NCBI GenBank assembly: GCA_964035545.1
Contig: OZ037767.1
Location: forward strand, 21,344,628-21,408,627
Length of the DNA: 64,000 nucleotides
Direction of reading: 5' to 3'
Source: Bugula neritina
Taxonomy: Eukaryota; Animalia; Bryozoa
The translations under genes were made by a program, and so were the position numbers. Positions 423 through 35,400 of this stretch are shown piece after piece. The notes beneath the pieces are model-generated. The model ran no database searches. It had not been told where the DNA came from and saw only the letters and a program-made list of their open reading frames with translations. Position 1 is the stretch's first letter, and each line of letters opens with the position of its first letter.

Positions 423-3400
423 AATTGGGTTCTCTGAGGAGACAAGTAAACTGGACTATACTAAGTTCCTTCAAGCGTTTGAAGAAGGAAGGAAGGATCA
501 GTACGAGCCCGCACTACCTGACGTCACTCACTACAAGCACTTTGACCACCTGTCACCTGAGAAGGCTGAGGCTAAACTGATTAAATACACCACAGAGCAA
601 TCTGCTGCCTTGACAGCGGTGAGTAATATAATATATGATAGTAGTGAGTAATATGATGGTAGTGATTAATGTAATACGATAATAATAGTGTTAATATAAT
701 ATGATGGTAGTGAGTAATATATGATAGTAGTAAGTAATATATGATAGTAGTAAGTAATATATGATAGTAGTGAGTAATATATGATAGTAGTAAGTAATAT
801 AATATTATAGTAGTAAGTAATATAATATTATAGTAGTGAGCAATATAATGTGTCAATAGTAATATAATATCATAGTAATGAAATATTCCAACTATGCAAG
901 CCAGTTATTGATTTGTGTGGCATTGTCTACACATAAAGAGATGACAATTCCTCTACCAGGAATAATGTCACGTGTTATCGTAACACAGCCTGTCAAATAG
1001 ACCAGCTGTCAGCCAATAGGAGGTTATTTGATGTGTTATCTAAAGCAAATAGCAACGCTCCTATGATACAGTACAGTGCATTGTATACAGTATAGACTAT
1101 AGTGTCTCATGCAATTGTTTACTCGTCTCTAAGGATGCACTGCAACAGTCAGTCAATATCTTAACACTAAATGCTAGACTCACTCTGAACACAAGCAGCA
1201 CTGCTGCAGCAGCATAATATATTATATGAGGCTATAGCTCAGTTCTATACACTTGGCTGGTGAAAGGCGGTGGGCTATGGATATGCCCCGTAGTCTAGTG
1301 AGCTGTAGTAACACCGAGTCTTACTCTAGGATTAATACTGACTCTTCAACAACTCAGAATAATATAAACTTTACTAACTGTAGACTCGTGAGTGCATCGT
1401 AATTTCATGGCTTATCTAATATACACTGTATAATATATACAGTGTTTGTACAGTATATACTGTACAGCACAGTGTATGTACAGTGTACTCTCAGTATACA
1501 TACAGTATATGTACAGTGTATGTATGTAAAGTAAATTTATATGTTGTATACAGTGTATAGGTATACACTGTTTGTACAATACATGTACATTGTATGTACC
1601 ATATACTGTATATATAGTATATGTGTATATTTTATATGTATAGTATATGTAGCCCTACAGTATAAACATGTATGCTTGTATAGTAAATAAACATATTAAT
1701 AATTTTGTTCATATTTTTACACTAAAGGTAGTACTTTTTATACTTCACTCCTTGTGGCATGTGTTTGCATGTGCTAGCATGTGTTAGCATGGGCTGGCAT
1801 ATGTTGGCACGTGTTGGCATGTGCTAGCGTACACGTGTTGACATGTGCTTGCATGTGTTAAAATGTGTTGGTATGTGTTGGTATGTGTGAGATACTGACT
1901 TCAAGTTTTGTTCTTCTAGATTTTCCAAGCCATTGACAAAGATAATACAGGAAGGGTGAAGGTTGAAGATTTCCGGAGAGTTCTTGACTCTTTCTGTTTC
2001 AAAATGACTGACTCGCAGTTCCGGAGTGTGATAAATAAACTCAAATCCAATGGCCAATCAGATATCAGTTACCCTGCTTTCATGGATGCTTATCTAGCTG
2101 GCACGAATATGCAAGTGAGTGGCATAAAGTCTCTTAACAATCACAGAGCTGTATTTATCTTTAGCTATACTTTCTGCTACATCTTCAGCCAATCAAAAGG
2201 CTGCTTATGAGTTTCTGTGAATTTACAACCTTAAAGTTTGTGAAATCTGCTACACTCTCAAGGTCATTTGATCTCATTTATCTTCTAAGGCTAAAATTAC
2301 ATTCGCAGCTTGTGATTTTCTTTTCATTAGAACGTAGATTTCAATGACAGACTGATGACTGACCTGCGAACGGCAACCGACAGCTTGTCTGGTGAGTCGT
2401 TTCTCCAGACATTACGAGACGCTGTCAGCAACAAGTTCTATCACATAGCTAGACACTTTGCTGAGATTGACTATGCCAAGATTGGAGTTGTCTCTCGTGA
2501 TGATTTTCATGATGTTATCGCTAAGCACTGCTTCAGAATGACTCAGAATCAGTTCGACAATCTCTGGTCAACTTTGAAAGTCAATCAGTTTGGTGAGTGA
2601 TGCTTTTAATACCTGCAGTTGGAGGGGGTTATCAGCCCCCCCTAATTAGATAGCTATATAGCCAATGATCAGTAAAATATTGTATACAGTAGGGGTGGGC
2701 AATTGAGGATCCCATAGCTATCTGTGGCCCTTAGCCCATTTTTCAGTGGCCCTTTTAATGCTTAGAATAAATAAAAACTGCTATACGCGTTCTGATTACA
2801 CAGCATAGGTTTGGCGACAAATTACTTTATTATAACAAAATATAATATGTGGCCCTTCGTTCTGGTGGGCTTCTGAACTTGGCCCTCGTGCAAAAGAAGT
2901 TGCCCACCTCGGGTATACAGTATGTCACAGTTCACACTCTAAACCTCCATCTCTTCTCCAGGCAACGTAGATTACAGAGACTTCCTCAAAACATTCTCGT
3001 CAAGTCAATTTATAAAAGCACCGCAAGCTAACGGGGACGGCAGGCAGTCTACGCTACTTGATCAACGGCCAGGCACCCAGGTTAGCTACATCATATTATG
3101 TTTAGAGCTGTGAGCTTAGCTCAGTTGTATGTAATACAACTTAAAGTTACGCTCACTACTCAATAGATGTATATTATGTGGCACAATTTGGAGTTACCTT
3201 TCCTGTTATGTGGTGTTGTAGAATGGAATAGAGCGAGAGCTACTGTTTAGCAGAAGTCAGTCGCGAGCAGGGAGTCGTATGCTGGCTAGTAGAGCGGGAG
3301 GGGGAGGACCGGCCCGCGCTGTGACCCCAATGGTCAACGCTGAGACTATCGAGGCAAGAATCAAGTCAGTTGTGAGTCGCAACTGGAAGAAGGTGCAGGA

Positions 3401-5232
3401 ACAGTGTAGGCAGTGGGACTTGTCTAACTCTGGCGAGATTGAAGTCAGTCAGTTCAAAGGTAAGAGTCCTTTGCTGAATCTCTATTTTGTACATTTCTAT
3501 TCTCAGTTAAATCTCTGTTCACATTTGCATGTAGTTACACATCTTGTTTCAATTCTTGTTAAGCTTGTGGCTTCATTTAAATAAAATATGTTGTTAGTTT
3601 CAGAAATGTCTAACTTTTTCAATAAAAATTCAAAACTTACAGTTTACGGAGATGCTTTTTGTGTAAAAATCTTTTCACTTGTTTCTAGAATTATGTGATA
3701 AATTCAAGTTTAACCTTGACCCTGCTGACTTCCACCTCCTTTCTATCAAATTTGACATCAACAACAATGGCCGCTTCTCATACACCCACTTCCTGAAGCA
3801 CTTTGTTCTCACTGTGACCCCTCATAGTCCGGGTGTGAGAGAAAGATCACAACTTCCAGAGACTAAGGCACAGGTAAGGTCCTGTGTGAAGTTCAAGGCC
3901 ACACCTTGCTTAAGTTGTGTGGTCACATTTGAGAATCTTAGTACATGGAAGTCTTGTTTTCTTGAGTTTAGTCTGAACTCTCATGTTAGCTTTATTGTTC
4001 TAGTGAGCTATAAAATATATATTCAGCTACACAGTTTATGTGCATTGAAATCGCATACTATAATCCATTGCTAAGATTTATTGATCAAACTAACGTATTT
4101 TATATTTTTTGTAGACCCCAGCACCAACAAAGGTAAATTTTCCGACAGTTTTCCATTTCCAATATAATTTAGTCTTTTATTTAGTTTGTGGTCACAGCAG
4201 AAGTGACCTTAACACTTGCTGACAGTGACCTTGACTATTAACGACAGTGACCTTGACACTTGCTGACAGTGACCTTGACACTTGCCGATAGTGACCTTGA
4301 CTCTTGCTGACAGTGACCTTGACTATTAACGACAGTGAGTTTGACACATACTGACATGACCTTGACACTTGCTGACAGTGACCTTGACACTTGCTGACAG
4401 TGACCTTGACACTCATCAACAGTGGTCGTGACACCTCTCTACAGTAACCAGCTTTGTTTCTGTTTGGTCTCCGTCAGTCTTTGTCAAGGATTAAGTACTT
4501 TTGTTTTTGCCACTGATTGGCAGTTTTGAATTGTGTGACTGACGATTGTAGTAATGTTTACACTGTTTCTTTGCTTTGCACAGCCCATTCTATTTTGTAA
4601 TATTGTCACATGTTTTTGGAAGTATTGATTCACAAGATCAAAGGTTGAACACATTTTGATAAACTAACTTACTTTTCAGAAAATTGTGGCAATGCTATGA
4701 AATAGACATCACTTTTACCCAACCATCAAAGTTGAAAGTAGTGGTAAAGGTGTTTGCCCACAGTTGAATGTGTGTATTGTGCCAACTTACCAGTAGCATA
4801 TGACATAGAATACACTACTTATATAATATATGACAAATACTGTTACAATGACATCACTTACACATTGATGTGGGGTAAATATAGTATAATGTATGATATA
4901 ATGCATAATTTAGCATTAGTTAGACTTAGAGCACTTTATTACCATTGCAGCAGTCTCCAGGGCTCACCAGTGACCAGTTCTACATGGCTATGCTTAGAGT
5001 ACGCGACACAGTTTTGACCAACTGGAAGGACATGAGAAGACAATTCCGTAAACAGGATCCAACGAGTAGCGGGGCAGTTTCTCCATTTCACTTTAGAGAC
5101 ATTCTTAGACAGTACAACGTAAACCTAACGGAAGACGAGTTCTATCACATCATGACCTATTATGACAAGGGAATGACGGGTAACATCAGTTACAATGACT
5201 TTATAGGTCACTTCCTTCGTGCAGTCAAGTAG
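423..5232 (+). CDS. EFCAB6: EF-hand calcium-binding domain protein, EFCAB6-like (3' part; 5' exons lie outside the window)
   Basis: Frame-consistent GT-AG exons 423-618, 1920-2114, 2331-2592, 2962-3080, 3222-3459, 3689-3873, 4115-4132 (microexon) and 4951-5232 (stop TAG). Repeated paired EF-hands (DKDNTGRVKVEDF, DLSNSGEIEVSQF, DINNNGRFSYTHF, DPTSSGAVSPFHF, DKGMTGNISYNDF) and a C-terminal WKDMRRQFRKQD...ISYNDF segment like EFCAB6. AATAAA near 5496. Confidence 0.8.
619..880 (+). repeat. Intronic ~20-bp minisatellite repeating the donor motif GTRAGTAATAT
   Basis: Begins at the 619 donor GTGAGT; units such as agtaagtaatatatgatagt. Confidence 0.85.
1756..1890 (+). repeat. 10-bp tandem repeat (gcatgtgttg-like)
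   Basis: About 13 degenerate units in an EFCAB6 intron. Confidence 0.8.
2690..2912. mobile_element. hAT-type MITE
   Basis: Imperfect TIR TAGGGGTGGGCAA...TTGCCCACCTCGG; 8-bp TSD GTATACAG at 2682-2689 and 2913-2920. A related copy starts at 52349. Confidence 0.8.
4193..4432 (+). repeat. 22-bp minisatellite (gacagtgaccttgacacttgct)
   Basis: About 10 tandem units in an EFCAB6 intron. Confidence 0.85.
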
Positions 5233-5852
5233 CACCCAGCTCCGTGAACTTTCACCTGGTTTTTTAAAGTAAAACTCATTTAATTTTAGTAGCAAATCCT
5301 TCCCCAGCATACCGTCCACAACCACAAGGTCATTCTATTCAGCACATCACAACTCTTTATAGGAAGTGGTTCAGAGATTCTGTCCTAACTTATAATAAGA
5401 AACCATGTGTTAATGAAGACATAAAGCCTTGTAATTTATAGTATATCAATTGTATTTACAATATATATTTAAAAAATATACACTATTTGTTTAAAAATAA
5501 ATTTATGAAACACAACTTTCAAATATATATTATGTAGATAAACCAGCATAGCAATAAATTAAAAATATTTTTCCAATATGTTACAACACACAATACAGTA
5601 ATAGAACTGAGTGCTTTGACTAGAATGGTTTTAAAATAGAGAACAATAGTATAGGATAACACATGGAGATTGTAATTAGCAACTTTCATAGCAAATATAT
5701 AGAATGTTTACAACACCTGTAATTCGCATAGCAAGTTTGTAATGTTTCTACAATGATATAGTTATTTATGAACAGCTATGCTAACACTGCATCATATGCT
5801 AAAACTGCATCATGTGCTAACACTGCACCATGTGCTAACACTGCACTATGTG

Positions 5853-26487: not shown

Positions 26488-29400
26488 ATGACCATGAGTG
26501 AGAACCAAACTCATCAGCCGAAGACTATAGTTTATCATTTGACTGACCTGTTTGATATTCACCAAGATATTGCCCCATCTGAAAGTGATGATAAAGATTG
26601 TATTCTTGCTAATACTACAGTTGCACATGAATTGGATGTCCCTCCAGCCATGTCTACTAATGCTGTAAGTTCACACCTATGACCTACATATGTATTCATA
26701 TTAAAAAATAATACTGAAATTGAGTTCTAGTGCTCAGATCTAATTTAGTTCTTATTATTTTGATGGTCACTCAAAAATGAAATACATTGTTGCTAGTTTT
26801 TTAATCATTTTAATTTCATGTTATAATAGACTTCCCTGTGAATTTTTGTATAACGGCTACAACTGAGTAAACTACTCTCTGAAATAGTCAAACCACTTTG
26901 TGGCTACAGCCGAGCTGTATGTCTTAGAGTTATCCCAAGATGTAGCTCACAATTAGTGTGCTTATACCGATGTGATACAAATTCTCTTCTAGATTCAGCA
27001 GATTCATAGGACCAAGACTTGTGTAGCGACATATGAAGATGTGAAAGCCCTTATAGAACAGCACGAGCTGGAACACACTCTCAAGTTTGTTACTTTCAAA
27101 GTTACCAAGGCGTTCACCTCCCCAACCCCTTCTGTAGAATCTAGTAAGAACTCTTTTATGTTGGAGTTAATCAGCACTCATTTACATTGCGTTGACCCTG
27201 CACTAAAAGTTGGTCTTGAATTTGTATACTATTTTAAACCCATATACGAGGGGCAAAACTTGACAGCGATGTTCTCTGTCGACTGTGCTCTCTGTTTACG
27301 CTTTGACTTCCGTAAAGCTGACTACAGTAGATTTATTCCATAAATCCCATATGTAAATTCCGTACTGTAAAGTCCTAACTGAAACTGTAGCGAAACCGTT
27401 GGGGGTTACGAATGGCTTAAAGTCTTCTATTGTTCTTTTGGCAATAGCCCCTCTCCAATTTACGACAAAGGCCGATAGCTTGATATCACTGAAAGTATCT
27501 TCGAGAGTTTCGACAAATGGCCTGTATTTTGCGACTTTATCCCTATAAACCTTTTCCGGGTCGATCCCGTCACTACAAATCGCCACGTCTATGATGTACG
27601 CACAGTTCTCTTTACTTACGACAAGATCCAGTTTCAGTAGTCCTTCTTTTGTCCGGAACATTGGTTCCCAGTCTACTTTAAAATCCACCTTTGCCATGGT
27701 ATCTGATACATATTTACATATTGCGTTGTGTCTTTTGATTCTGGCTCCGTGAGAGCGTGGACACTGTTGTAAAATGTGTGCGATGGTATTCGGTGCATTC
27801 ACGCACACAGGGCAACTTCTCGAGTGTGCGCTCGACAGGCGAGACAACATCATGCCGCTGGGCAAGAGATTGTGCCTTAAATGCACGGCTCTGATGAAGT
27901 CCCGCCCTGTCAGCCATGAGTGGTTTGCTGTCTTAATCCATTGATGGACCTTGGGACAGGTTTGATGGCAGATGAGCCCTTTCCCGTCTACTGAAATATG
28001 TAAAAGTTCTCGAAAATGTTCCTTGATGTTTTCCTTAGATGTCACTGGGGTTCCTACGATGGTTGGTGCTGGGGTCGGTAAATTGCCGGTAATGACGTTA
28101 GTTAACGGGTTATTGTATGTTAATAATCTGCAGTTTCTAGTGTATCTTAAGAGCGGAACTTGGAATAAGAAAGATGGGATGCCAAGTCCGCCGTCTTTAG
28201 TTGCTGAGTGGAAAATTGCTTTTGAGCAGTTGATTCTAATTTTTAGCCATTGCTTGACAAACGCTCTTGTCAATGTGTCTAGATGTTTCAGGCTACCACT
28301 GCATACTGTGGAGATGACCAATTGGTGTAGCAATTTTGGTATTAAGTGCTCTCTTAAAATTTTGAGTCTTTGTTGGGGTTTAAGGGGAGCTCTTGTTATG
28401 TTATTCATAGCCTTGACAAAGTCCTCTTTGGGTGTGTGAATTGCTCCTAGAGCTCCTATTTTAGCACCTAGACATTTGTAGGTGTCATTGATGGTCAATG
28501 CTGCAATTGAGTTCTGATTGTTTTTGAGTATGGGTCTTGGATTACACACCCACTTTTTCCGTTTGCTAGTTATTCCTAAAGTCGCACTTTTCTTATGGTT
28601 AATTTTAAGCCCACATAGCGCTAATTGCTCCTCCAATATTTTAAAATTCTGCTGCAGTCCCGCGTCTGTCTTGCTAAAAATAACTAGATCGTCTGCGTAT
28701 GCCATGAATGTGATGGTAGCGCCATTCTTAAATTGATAGTTTAAATTACTGTCCAGGTTTTCTGTACACAGTTCCATTACCGCATTGAAGAGGTGTACTA
28801 ATAGAGGGTCTCCTTGTTTAATGCCACGATTTATCTCAATCTCCCTTCCCATTCTTTCAGGTAGTCTCAATCTTGTTGTTTCTTTCTCATAGAAGCCTTT
28901 AAGATATTTGATTAGATGTTCTGGAACACCTAGTCTCCTGCACGCCACCCATAGGGTTTGGTGCGAGACGCTATCAAATGCTTTAGACACGTCTATGAAC
29001 GCTAGCTTTAGATTTTTATACTTTTCCTTTGCCTCGCTGATAGTTTTCTGTAGTAGTTGGGTATTGAAGTAAAGGCCATCGTCTTTTTTGAAGCCTTTGT
29101 GTCGATCATTGTAGGGTAGTTTGCTTGAGAAGCGCTCACCGAGGATGGAATGGTAAAGCCTGCTAAAGGTGGAGGTTACTGTGATCGGTCTGAGATCTCC
29201 TGGGTCGGTGGTACCAATGACCTTTGGTATGAGTGTGGTAGTTCCCCTGGGCATACCTGATGGTGATATCCCACTTAATAGCCAAAGATTACAGCATGAC
29301 ACAAGTAGTGACACATTCATTTTCTTGAGATCTCTCCATGTATATCCGTCTAATCCCGGGAGCCCTTGCTCTTCTTTCCTAAAATCTCCTTTATCTCTGC

Positions 29401-32400
29401 TGGTGTAATTGGTTGTAAAAGTTCGTTGTGAACTTGTAGTGCTTCTAGATGCCGGTTATCTGTTATAGACCTGGTCTCAAAGATGTTGCGCCAATATGCC
29501 TCGGCTGTAGATAGTATTGCCGCCTCCTCATCCCCATAGGTGCCAGAGATTATTTGTTGTGTAATTATCCTTGGATCTGATTTTAGTCCATTTTGTACTT
29601 TTTTGAATATGTCCTTTCTCCTCCTTCTTCCTGTTCTTGCCATTTTCCTTTGATGTATTACTTTTGCTCTTTCATTGGTGTTCCTTTATTGGGGAAGTTT
29701 GAATCGAAAACTCCGTCTATAAAATGTTGGCAGCTAATTAAGGTTTTAGGGTCAGTCGATATTACCATTCTATTTCACATTAGGTCAAAGTCAATGTTCA
29801 TTAGCTGTCCTTCGTGTCCGAAGATGACTTCCGGTGAATCATGGTCCTCCATTTACATCTGTCTTTGCTGAGAGATTGCCAGCTACCAATAGGGATCTTC
29901 AGGTCTTTTAGATTGCGTTTAACGGTATCCTTGAATCTCAGTCGCGGCCTGCCAACACCACGGGTGCCTTCTTTCAATTGTGAATAGAGAATTTGTTTAG
30001 GTAATCTAGAATTATCCATTTGATGCACATGACCAGCCCATCTCAGGTTTTTTTGAATGAGTAGTTCATACATGCTGGGTAGATTTGCCTGTGCTAGAGT
30101 CTCCTCATTCGAGATGAAATCCCACCACTTCACGTTCAAGATCTGGCGTAGATGTCTCATCATATAGGTGTTGAATTTGTGAGCGGCTATCCTGTATACA
30201 GGCCAGGCCTCCGCTCCATAGAGCAGAGAGGACAGGACAATGGCTCTGTACACTGTACACTTGGTCTTGAATGACAGATTCTTATTGTACCACACTTTGG
30301 TCTTTAGTCTGCCGAATGAGATTGAAGCATTGGACATCCTTGTATGAATCTCTTCATCCATCTTGTTGTTGCACATCACTGTAGACCCAAGATATTTAAA
30401 CTTATTGACGTTGGCAAGGTCTTCATTATCTATGCAGATACTGTCACCACTGTCATGGGCTCCAGGTGCCGGTTGGTAGAGCGTTTCCGTTTTCTTGATA
30501 TTGATCTTCAGACCAAAAGCTTTGGAAGCTCTGGCGAATCTGTCGACTAATTCCTGTGCATTGCCATGGCTGTGTGCAACGAAGGCAGTGTCGTCAGCAA
30601 ACATGAGTTCTCTAACCAATACTTTCTGTGTTCTTGTTGTTGACTTGTATTGGTTCACATTGAACAGATCAGCTCCAGGTCTACTTTGAATCCAGACGCC
30701 TTTATCACAGTTTTCAAATGCGTGCTGTAGAACAGCCGATAAGAAAATAGAGAATAGCGTTGGAGCCAACACACATCCTTGTTTCACACCATTGTTGACC
30801 TGGAATGACTCAGATAACTCCTCCTTCAGCTTGACTGAGGCCTTCATGCCAGTATGGAGAGCGCTGATAAGATTGGTGAAGTGACTGGGAAAACCGAGTT
30901 TCTGTAAGATCTTCCACAGGGTCGCCCGATCAACAGTATCGAACGCTTTGGTGAAGTCAATGAAGACCATGTACAGGGGCATATTTTGCTCGATGCATTT
31001 TTCCTGTATCTGCTTCAGTGCAAATATCATGTCTGCTGTTCCCCTTCCACTACGGAATCCACACTGAGTTTCGGGTAGGAAGTTTTCTGCATATGATGTC
31101 AGTCTATTTAGAAGGACACGAGCAAAAACTTTACCGGGAATTGAGAGCAGGGAGATACCTCTGTAGTTACCGCACAGCTTCCGATCACCCTTTTTGAAGA
31201 TGGTTATAAGTTGGGCAGCTTTCCAATCTTGAGGGACTACAGCAGTTTTCCATGCCTCCTTTATTATCTCATGGAGAGTACTTATTAGTTTGGGCCCTCC
31301 CCTTTTGATAACCTCAGGGTGAATACCATCAGAGCCAGGTGATTTCCCTTCACTTAGCATCGAAGTTGCCTTGATGATATCTTCAATATCTGGGCAATCG
31401 TCCATCCAGTCCTGAATGGGAGCTTGTCTCAGGTTCTCAATGATGTTGTCATCAATATCTGGAGTCTCGTTTAGTAGCTTGCTGAAATGCTCTGTCCATC
31501 TCGCTAGAAGATCTTGTTTTTCTGTCAGGAGTGTTGAGCTGTCACTGGCCAGGAGCTGGTCAGGATGACTCACTCTTGGACCCCAAACAGTTTTCGTGCT
31601 TTGGTATAAGCCTTTCATGTCGTTAGTGTCAGCAAACCGTTGCAGTTCAGCAGCTTTTGCCAACCACCAGTCGTTCTTGAGCTCCCTGCATCTTCCTGTG
31701 AGTTTTCTGCCAGCCATTCTAAGCTTTGACTTGTTCGAGCGAGTATCCCTGGTTAACATGTCTGCTCTGGCCTTGTTTCTCTTCTGGATGAGTTCTTGAA
31801 GCTCATCATTATTCTCGTCAAACCAGTCCTCATGCTTCCTGCTGACAGTGCCGAGGTGCACTTTTGACTCTGCATAAACTATCTCTTTGAATGCTCTCCA
31901 CTTATTCTCTACGCCCTCTGGAGCAGAGTTCAGTTTCCCAGCAAGGGACTTTTCCAGTTCTTGTCTTACTTCCTCATTCTTAGGTCGAGAAACGTCCAGC
32001 TTCTGGCAAGGTGTTCTCCCTTTCTTCATTTTTCTCCTCACTCTGAGCTTAGCTTTTGACCTGATCATGATGTGGTCAGTACTGCAATTTGCCCCTCTCA
32101 TCGCCCTTGTGTCCAGAATGTCTGGTAGATCACGTTGTCGTGTGATAACAAAATCGATGAGATGCCAGTTCTTGCTTCTCGGGTGCATCCAAGAAAACTT
32201 GTGAGCTGGTTTATGCTTGAAGAAGGTGTTGGTAATGCACAGTTGATGTTCACTACAGACTGAGATCAGAAGTTCACCATTGGAGTTCAGGTTTCCGCAG
32301 CCATACTTGCCTATCACACCGGGCCAGGTTGAGTGATCTTGTCCAACCCTAGCATTGAAGTCTCCCATGAGTAAGATCTTATCAGCTGCTGGGACTGATC

Positions 32401-35400
32401 TTAGAGCCTGATTCAGTTGGTCATAGAATCTGTTGATGTTTTCTTGGCTGTTTGTCATCGTGGGAGCATAGACAGCTATCACAGTGCACCATCGCTCATC
32501 AGACAGAGGAACCCTGAGTGACATCAGTCTGTCGCTTATAGCCTTTGGCTCTTCGATTAGTCTCGAAACAAGTTCGTTCCTGATAGCAAGAGCCACGCCT
32601 GACTCACTGCGCTCAGATGCAGTTTTGCCACTCCAATAAATGGTGTAGCCTGACTCTTCACGAATGTTACCGGTATCTTTGAATCTGATTTCACTCAGTG
32701 CTGCATTGTCGATGCCATACTTCTGTAGTTCAGATGAAATGATTGCACTTCTTCTCTCAGGTCTTTCTGTGTTCTCCCGGTCTAGCATTGTTTGTATGTT
32801 CCATGATGCAAGGTTGAGTTTAGAAATTTGGACCTTTTTATCCTGGGCGACGTCCTGCCAATATGATTTCGTGTTCATTTTTCTTTTCATGATTCAATCG
32901 GATTATGCTGACAAGAAGTTTAAGGATACTTAGGGTTTTGTCAGTTGCTTAAGCACCCCTCTCCACTAAAGAAGTACGCTGTGCTGGCAAGGAGTGTCCA
33001 GGACGAGCACAGCAGTTCAGTAGTCGCAGTGACTGGCCGAGTAAATTCGCCTTCTCAAAGTGTCACGTTTCTGGATGGATTGTTGTCTGGGTGATCAACC
33101 CATAGATCCTCATACTATTAGCCTGGGTGTATCTACACCCAGTTACCAGTGGTGACCGCTTGGAGGTTAGTATGAAGTCTTGACTGATGGGAACTTCTCT
33201 ACAGTACATCATTGCCATCAGTCCTTGGATGCTGGGGTCCGTAGTGTAAACTGGTACAGCTCTTGGTTCCACCATCCACCACCACCATGTTGGTGGTGGA
33301 TGGTGGAACCATCCAAAGTCAATGTTACTGAGTAAAAATTCAAAGTCCGCATTTAATGTAGTTTGTTGAGTTGGAGTGTTGTCAGAGTCTTCCTCGTTTC
33401 TAGGTGTCAACATATCTTCACATTCTCCTTTTTGGATGTTGTCCAGTATCCCTTTGTATTGTGGATTTTTATTCCTCACTCCTTTAATCTGTTCTATTGT
33501 GTACATCGAAAGCTTACTTTGTATTCTTTGATTGATGTTCCTTGCCCCTTCAAATTCCTTTTCCCATCTGGCTACTTCAGATAGGGTTTTATAGTTCCAA
33601 CGTTGTTTCCTTACAGTAGGCACCGCTGCGTGGTAAAGTTCACTATTTGCTCTCCTGAGGTTAAGTGAGAGTCCTGCCGCCTTCCCAAATGGGTGTTTGC
33701 ATATAGAACATGTTAACTGCCCACAGCTTTCGCATCTTACAGGCACCGATTCCTTGAACGAATCATACTGAGTTAGTTGGCACGTTTCCGCCGACTTGCA
33801 AACTGGATTTGCACAAAATACTGTCTTAACTGTACCGCTATATGTGAGCGACACTTGTGAACTGGCCTGATGACAAGCCGAGTTATCACAGTTCAGAGAC
33901 AATACTCTGAAAAGTGATAAAGAGAGAGATGCGGGTTATCCTGATCGTCAGTCGTCTGTCCTCCGTTAGCCACTGGGAAGGTGTCCCAGAGTTACCGACT
34001 CTCACCACTAGGAGGTGGAGGTACAGCCTTTGATGCAAGGATATAACTGTGATCAGCAGCTATATCAGTTGACTCTAGATGTAACTTCTCTTGCACCCAT
34101 TTTACTGACCTCTTGATCACCTTGTGGTAAGTTTTATGTGTATACTCCCTAGTTGTTTCCTCAAAACACCTGTTCCTGGAAGATGGCATTCCTTATATGA
34201 TAATTGGTAAAAAGGTGTATCAGTGTCAGCATGGTGTAGATAAAAACATGTCTTCAAAGATCAAGTACAAGGTAAGTTAGTTCATCCAGTCATAATCTGC
34301 AAGTCTATCTGGCTGTTACATCACAACCTGCATCTACATGTTGTCTAGTAACTAACTAACCACAGTCACATTCACTGTTATACTCACTCAGTCACTCTCA
34401 CACTTGTGTTCATAGTCAAACACACACAGTGACTGCTATAGCATACTGCACTTTCTTCTTAAGGAAAGAGTAGATGCATATCAGGCTGCTGGTCAGAATC
34501 TGTATAAACGAAGACGATCATCGTCAAAGAAGATGCGTTGCAGAGCTTACATCACAGTGCGCCGACTATTAAAGGTCAACACTGTGGTAGGTTACATTAC
34601 TAAAGGTTAACAATGTGGTAGGTTAAACTTCTGAAAGTCAACACTGTGGTAGGTTACTATACTGAGAGTTGTTACTGTGGTAGGTTACATTCTTGTGCTG
34701 CAGTTTAAGTTTATTCAGTTTCAGATGAGTTGCATCTCATCTGAACATCTCAGTGTGTTTATTTATTTAGTTTGCACCGAATCTCTCGCTCTATCACAAA
34801 AGGATAGCTATACAAAATGTGAAGAAGAAATTATCAGCTAGTGAATACACTTTCACCGATGTGTATGAGGTCTCACTTCCGGATGTTTCTTTCCACAATC
34901 ATGACATTGATGAGGTATGATCTGTTGTACTCCACTTTATATACACACTGTATAATGACTAAATGATTAATATTATATACTGAATATATACTGTACACTT
35001 CCTGTGTATTGACTGTATACTGACTGTGTATTGACTGTATACTAACTGCGTATTGACTGTGTACTGACTGTGTATTGACTGTATACTAACTGTGTATTGA
35101 CTGTGTATTGACTGTATACTTCCTGTGTACTGACTGTATACTTCCTGTGTATTGACTGTATACTAACTGTGTATTGACTGTATACTGACTGTGTATTGAC
35201 TGTATACTGGCTGTGTATTGACTGTATACTGACTGTATACTGGCTGTGTATTGACTGTATACTGACTGTGTATTGACTCTATACTGACTGTTTATTGACT
35301 GTATACTGACTGTGTATTGACTGTATACTGACTAAAATATATTGATATTAACAGGAAGCAGATGGTAAGCAAGCCTTAGACCCAAGAATTATAAGAAAGA

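Follow-up and report, generated by a model that had tools for sequence, protein, structure and literature searches.

A dead R2-clade retrotransposon copy in an intron of Bugula neritina, and a 28S-like leader on related copies

In this work, a 64,000-nucleotide (nt) stretch of the Bugula neritina genome (assembly GCA_964035545.1, contig OZ037767.1, positions 21,344,628 to 21,408,627; the whole of it is called the window, and unprefixed positions are counted within it) was analysed with respect to an R2-type retrotransposon on its minus strand. We read positions 34101-27204 as an old, dead copy of an R2-clade element outside the ribosomal DNA (rDNA), antisense within an intron of an ALS2CR8-like gene and later split by a long interspersed nuclear element (LINE), with a ribozyme whose P1 stem would take its 5' strand from 28S rRNA positions -13 to -7. 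The probability that we assign to this reading is about 0.7. It is an ordinary case of a known kind, a degenerate R2 fossil outside rDNA, and the modest interest that remains lies in the footprint of a 28S leader, starting at -13, on sister copies. A preliminary description had regarded the same element as a full-length R2 specialised for rDNA that had inserted off-target at an imitation of the 28S site.

Identification and decay of the R2 copy

The assignment to the R2 clade, which the preliminary description had already made, was borne out by protein comparisons. A Pfam RVT_1 domain was detected in the R2 open reading frame (ORF; E 1.6e-25), and the best match in a search of solved structures (PDB) was the Bombyx mori R2 protein (8gh6, E 4e-98), followed by the zebra-finch R2Tg and other R2 proteins, with LINE-1 ORF2 far behind (1e-16). 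The C-terminal 284 amino acids (aa) can be aligned with R2Bm residues 856-1040 (E 9.5e-29), and the alignment takes in the CCHC and K(P/L)D...D motifs; the C-terminal CCHC and restriction-like endonuclease (RLE) of the R2 clade are thus present. No apurinic/apyrimidinic endonuclease (APE) domain was found in the R2 ORF by Pfam. At the N-terminus, a C2H2 zinc finger and a Myb-like region were read from the alignment. On the other hand, neither the window copy nor any related copy is inserted at the 28S site TTAAGG^TAGCC that is typical of the clade (the caret marks the junction), and the only pointer to a 28S past of the family is a 13-nt leader resembling 28S that other copies have at their 5' ends.

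The ORF lies in two parts on the minus strand. The N-terminal part (33314..33902), with its one C2H2 zinc finger and Myb-like region, was recognised by tblastn against the related loci L021, L022, and L023, and the remainder (27296..29785), with the reverse transcriptase, CCHC, and RLE, was recognised by three-frame translation, Pfam RVT_1, and PDB matches to R2Bm and R2Tg. Between them, at 29799..33313 and also on the minus strand, lies a young APE-type element without long terminal repeats (Pfam Exo_endo_phos, Exo_endo_phos_2, and RVT_1). This nested LINE is 3,515 bp long, has an intact ORF of 1029 aa (32890-29801), and is bounded by a perfect 13-bp target duplication, aacattgactttg (33326-33314 and 29798-29786). 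In the uninterrupted relatives L022 and L023, the equivalent of window 33314 is joined directly to that of about 29798, with an overlap of 19 nt in L022 and, in L023, of 13 nt, just as long as the target duplication. At least 28 further copies of the nested LINE in the genome are 96-99% identical, so its insertion into the old R2 must be recent, and judging from these copies the LINE family appears to have been active recently. The LINE has no poly(A), ends in ...GCTAATG, and has, at its 5' end, a perfect palindrome of 46 nt (33310-33265).

Once the nested LINE is subtracted from the span of about 6.8 kb, 3,370 bp of R2 proper are left, in a broken frame, and the earlier view of a full-length R2 had to be given up. 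In three-frame translation, the frame is interrupted by stops that fall within about 29785-29660 and by a frameshift near 29365, while the last 674 codons (29320-27296) are open. In the tblastn alignment, asparagine stands in place of both histidines in the zinc finger of the window copy (LNLRRAN). In L022 and L021 the finger has the form C-x2-C...LHLRRAH or LHLRKAH, with both histidines kept, followed by a W...E...IKGVRN region; in L023 the second is lost (LHLRRAQ). Because of the stops, the frameshift, and the loss of the zinc-finger histidines, the R2 copy in the window is dead.

Ends of the element

The preliminary description had the element start at 34026, right after AAGG (34030-34027), and end at 27232, right before TAG (27231-27229). 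Four related loci were found when the 5' region of the element was searched against the genome at the DNA level. L022 (C3:20.04 Mb, about 80% identical) has the ribozyme together with about 75 nt upstream of 34026, as far as window 34101, and L025 (C9) and L021 (C3:20.59 Mb) likewise start with G(G/A)GTGCAAGA and have portions of the sequence behind it. The flanks of L021, L022, and L025 are unrelated to each other. This 5' extension, a structured insert at 34027..34097 (minus strand) common to L022 (about 80% identity), L025, and the start of L021, was compared with rDNA over 3 kb around the R2 site; it is found in the genome solely alongside R2 copies, and no host exon lies within 34027-34101. 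At the other end, L021 and L020 share sequence with the window through ...TAGTATACAAATTCAAGACCA.CTTTTA, which is 28 nt beyond 27232, to position 27204. The 3' untranslated region (27204..27295, minus strand, no poly(A)) includes this conserved tail, TAGTATACAAATTCAAGACCAACTTTTA (27231-27204). It has 2 mismatches in 28 nt in L021, and the 28-mer occurs in the genome only in the window copy and L021, that is, at two R2 ends.

Both the AAGG and the TAG are internal to the element, because the sequence on either side is shared by copies in unrelated flanks, and by this comparison the element runs from 34101 to 27204. A pattern search of the genome with the joined flanks of the preliminary description gave no match at up to 3 mismatches. 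The corrected ends would imply a pre-insertion intron site ...GGTCAGTAAA(ATG)^GTGCAGGGTC. At these ends, no target duplication beyond that of shuffled sequences was found for the window copy or L021, and the corrected window flanks show no resemblance to 28S. The locus thus ceases to be an example of minimal R2 target recognition.

Ribozyme and the source of its P1 strand

The core of a putative ribozyme like that of hepatitis delta virus (HDV), as laid out in the preliminary description, was found at 33956..34026 (minus strand), by means of a sub-threshold Rfam match, folding, and the near-identical sequence of L022. Its P2 pairs CUGUaCCUCC (34026-34017) with GGAGGACAG (33964-33956), P3 pairs ACC with GGU, L3 is UCCUAGU, P1.1 is GG, P4 pairs CUGGGA with UCCCAG, J4/2 is CUAAC with the C at 33969, and the P1 3' strand is GAGAGUC (34003-33997). 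RNAfold recovers P2, P3, and P4 in a nested fold. It had been noted that GAGAGUC lacks a good partner upstream, and indeed no acceptable partner exists within 270 nt, the best candidates pairing at 6 of 7 positions with only 2-3 Watson-Crick pairs. The genome's own 28S reads ...CTATGACTCTCTTAAGG^TAGCC, and its GACUCUC at -13 to -7, which had been proposed as the missing strand, is the exact and only perfect complement of GAGAGUC in -113 to -1. The duplex with GAGAGUC has an energy of -9.5 kcal/mol for the 28S strand vs. -0.3 for the window positions 34098..34110. A P1 made with upstream 28S sequence and cleavage at -13 are documented for the R2 elements of Nasonia vitripennis and flour beetle B (Eickbush, Burke and Eickbush, 2013; PMC3774820).

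The 75-nt stretch that separates P2 from the expected P1 strand folds as a hairpin domain (RNAfold) with the closing stem GGUGCAAG with CUUGCAUC, which is kept in L025 with a G-U pair changed to G-C. We regard it as an insert that belongs to the element and sits in the joining region J1/2. The window copy itself is without a usable P1 5' strand, and its ribozyme should be inactive.

A 28S-like leader on sister copies

The 13 nt directly before the shared 5' start were compared with 28S positions -13 to -1 (GACTCTCTTAAGG). The leader of L021, AACTCTCTTAATG, matches at 11 of 13 positions, that of L025, GGCTGCCTTCAGG, at nine, and that of L022, GTGAAACTTAATG, at seven. Among all 13-mers of the window, at least 11 matches occur with a frequency of 8e-6, at least nine with 9e-4, and at least seven with 0.02. 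The corresponding window sequence, GGTCAGTAAAATG (34098..34110, minus strand), matches at four positions, and only its last four nucleotides (AATG, 34101-34098) are common to L022. In the leader-bearing copies the similarity to 28S ends upstream of -13. A search for further leader-bearing 5' ends returned L021 and one hit with 3 mismatches at L066 (C3:6136700), which was taken as chance: no R2 sequence lies behind it, and a control with the reversed pattern gave 4 hits.

We hypothesize that in the active ancestors the R2 was transcribed together with 28S or with a 28S-derived leader. The RNA would then cleave itself at -13, with the leader GACUCUCUUAAGG remaining as its 5' terminus, and the leader-bearing RNA may occasionally have been copied into a site outside rDNA, carrying the leader along. 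In the other fossil copies the leader would still be visible, its start aligned with the predicted cleavage position. In the window copy, the 5' end would be incomplete or decayed, and a ribozyme without P1 should be inactive in a copy that is dead anyway. An rDNA-resident master, if there is one, would be expected to have the 5' 28S junction ...GACTCTCTTAA(GG)^(T)GGGTGCAAGAG and the 3' junction ...CCAACTTTTA^TAGCC.

As 13 nt of 28S remain on an RNA that has been cut at -13, an off-target copy that is complete comes with a P1 strand of its own. The missing leader of the window copy is therefore due to an incomplete or decayed 5' end and not to its departure from rDNA. The earlier expectation that the ribozyme is inactive off-target thus stands for the window copy, which lacks the P1 5' strand, and falls as a general statement, as GACTCTC-like leaders accompany sister copies.

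Distribution and divergence of the family

About seven copies or fragments make up the family of the window copy; they are scattered over C3 (four), C2 (two), C7 (one), and C9 (one) and are 63-84% identical in nucleotides. The ratio of nonsynonymous to synonymous divergence (dN/dS) is 0.12 in comparison with L056; in comparison with L021 and L023, synonymous sites are saturated and the nonsynonymous proportion (pN) is 0.12-0.14. By these values, the divergence of the family arose under purifying selection. From the low dN/dS together with the saturated synonymous sites, it follows that each fossil derives from a distinct, long-lived active sublineage. The fossils fit rare escapes from masters that are absent from the assembly and reside most plausibly in under-assembled rDNA. 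The 16 R2 sites in assembled 28S genes (13 on C6 and three on C135) are all uninterrupted.

Weighing of the alternatives

Several results weigh against a dead off-target copy of an R2 that used 28S for its P1. No copy of the family is inside any of the 16 assembled 28S genes, so an rDNA home is what we infer for it. Of four 5' ends in all, not one has both the leader and the ribozyme core intact. The core itself is matched along its full length by the Rfam model drz-agam-1 (34037-33957) at 22.5 bits, below the gathering score of 37 (E 0.043), no match was obtained in the whole window at Rfam gathering thresholds, and its RNAfold energy is no better than that of shuffles (z -0.01). Furthermore, three copies have in common a T in ...TTAATG where 28S has G, and this T can be either an inherited change in a leader carried by the element or the first base of the element after a 2-bp deletion of 28S. 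The shared T and the absence of the family from assembled 28S genes would also suit a non-target-specific R2 lineage resembling the R2NS families, in which a 28S-derived leader became fixed in the element, the ribozyme became self-contained, and the element spread outside rDNA. The about seven copies or fragments, all dispersed at non-rDNA sites without a common flank, agree with this, and R2NS families are documented in a planarian and a liver fluke (PMC5035012). However, the copy number is very low, each copy is a separate, deeply diverged sublineage with saturated synonymous divergence (dS), and there are no young, near-identical bursts as in R2NS families. In addition, assembly of the rDNA arrays is incomplete (16 units) and may have missed masters residing there, and the T may simply be the first base of the element. 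We therefore consider such a lineage unlikely, though it is the alternative to be taken most seriously. Its evolutionary core, that an R2 lineage made the P1 strand once supplied by 28S element-borne and so freed its ribozyme from co-transcription with rRNA for a life outside rDNA, is put forward here as a doubtful, tentative idea.

The remaining two explanations concern the junctions. In the model of the preliminary description, the element is a full-length rDNA specialist that is bounded by 34026 and 27232 and that went off-target into an AAGG^TAG, an imitation of the 7-nt core of the 28S site; this would give the empty site ...CAAAGG^TAGTATAC and the 28S junction TTAAGG^CTGTACCTCC. AAGG does precede the P2 strand, TAG does follow a run of A, and the P1 3' strand does match 28S; but both supposed flanks are conserved in copies at unrelated contexts, the empty version with the flanks joined is absent from the genome, and the 6.8-kb span contains a nested LINE. 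Two outcomes that the preliminary description itself had named as refuting it, a 3' untranslated region running beyond 27232 and GACTCTC-like strands on other copies, were observed. This leaves the model with hardly any credibility. Alternatively, the shared 5' and 3' stretches could be a specific target that is itself repeated in the genome, such as a small repeat or an RNA gene, and not element sequence. Lineages of the R2 superclade with other specific targets are known (R8 and R9; PMC5035012). However, the uninterrupted target would have to exist, and the joined pattern has zero matches in the genome at up to 3 mismatches; the 28-nt tail is found at R2 ends only and the 5' stretch with R2 copies only, and Rfam shows no RNA gene there. 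A specific target is thus very improbable. It follows from this comparison that a dead copy of an R2 whose P1 was built with 28S is the reading that we retain.

Host gene

As the preliminary description proposed, the insertion is in an intron of a protein-coding gene, with probable exons on both sides on the plus strand, so the R2 is antisense to its host. The probable upstream exon (26993..27144, followed by the donor GTAAGA) was recognised by its open frame and splice signals and has no Pfam match, each exon having been searched separately. The probable downstream exon (34152..34271) is ALS2CR8-like (CARF-like), with a Pfam ALS2CR8 score of 32.1 bits vs. the cut-off of 28.9 (E 1.5e-7). Without the insert, the intron is about 109 nt with the corrected ends, and not 214 nt as calculated before, and it was enlarged to about 7 kb by the R2 and the nested LINE.

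rDNA arrays and other R2 lineages

On contig C6, the rDNA array (G000:C6:7120143-7267448) consists of six units in one orientation followed by seven in the opposite one, head-to-head near 7.19 Mb. The units are spaced by 11.3-13.3 kb, all their R2 sites are empty, and the arrangement may be genuine or may have arisen in assembly. When 28S half-sites were used to look for rDNA units interrupted by an R2, only a pseudo-unit on C9 turned up. The R2 that it carries (C9:1.4715 Mb), the only one at a 28S site, is 5'-truncated and belongs to a different lineage, with 43% aa identity to the window R2. This 28S pseudo-unit (L058, G000:C9:1468000-1477999, about 3251-5514) is outside the main arrays and 96-98% identical to the array copies; its R2 occupies the canonical site with an A18 tail adjoining TAGCTAAATGCC, and 28S positions -28 to -1 are deleted at the 5' junction.

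Dense fragments of several R2 lineages, with 34-73% aa identity to the window R2, occur at G000:C3:20.00-20.04 Mb, 1.3 Mb from the window. This cluster (L022, L034, L036, L041, L042, L047, and L050-L054) looks like an R2 graveyard, and at L022 two distinct R2 lineages adjoin each other. Moreover, another R2 lineage with 45% aa identity is present at L059 (G000:C9:316853-318535), with a frame of 747 aa without stops. No 28S sequence lies within the 10 kb examined around it, so it may be a further non-rDNA R2.

Comparison with known systems and implications

The closest parallels are the R2 elements of Nasonia vitripennis and flour beetle B, in which, like here, the P1 5' strand comes from 28S and cleavage is predicted at -13. 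The RNA retains 28S nucleotides, which are seen again at 5' junctions, so that 28S sequence retained at R2 5' ends is documented (PMC3774820), and we liken this to the family described here. Long element sequence in J1/2 is also known from the silkmoth R2, with loops of 216-498 nt (PMC3774820) vs. 75 nt in the window family. Unlike in those elements, here only non-rDNA fossils are available, none of them in 28S genes, the cleavage is a predicted one, and the leader of the window copy has been lost. Incomplete or degenerate non-rDNA copies as found here were described for R1 and R2 in Drosophila, where full-length non-rDNA R1 copies begin with 7-28 bp of upstream 28S, a counterpart of the leader (Stage and Eickbush, 2009; PMC2718515). 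However, non-rDNA and rDNA copies of R2 in Drosophila are 1-2% apart (PMC2718515), whereas the copies here, all of them outside rDNA, differ by 17-30% among themselves. The R2NS families are likewise R2-clade elements dispersed outside 28S with unrelated flanks, but their copies are more than 98% identical to the consensus, whereas here there are only a few old, mutually diverged ones.

The AAGG^TAG case is unfit for reasoning on the off-target rules of R2, for instance in R2-based gene insertion tools. The leader footprint, on the other hand, gives in-genome support to the published model in which upstream cleavage leaves 28S nucleotides on the 5' end of R2 RNAs, and it means that off-target copies of such an R2 need not lack P1. 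If the P1 leader did become element-borne, it would represent a concrete evolutionary route from an rDNA specialist to a non-specific R2.

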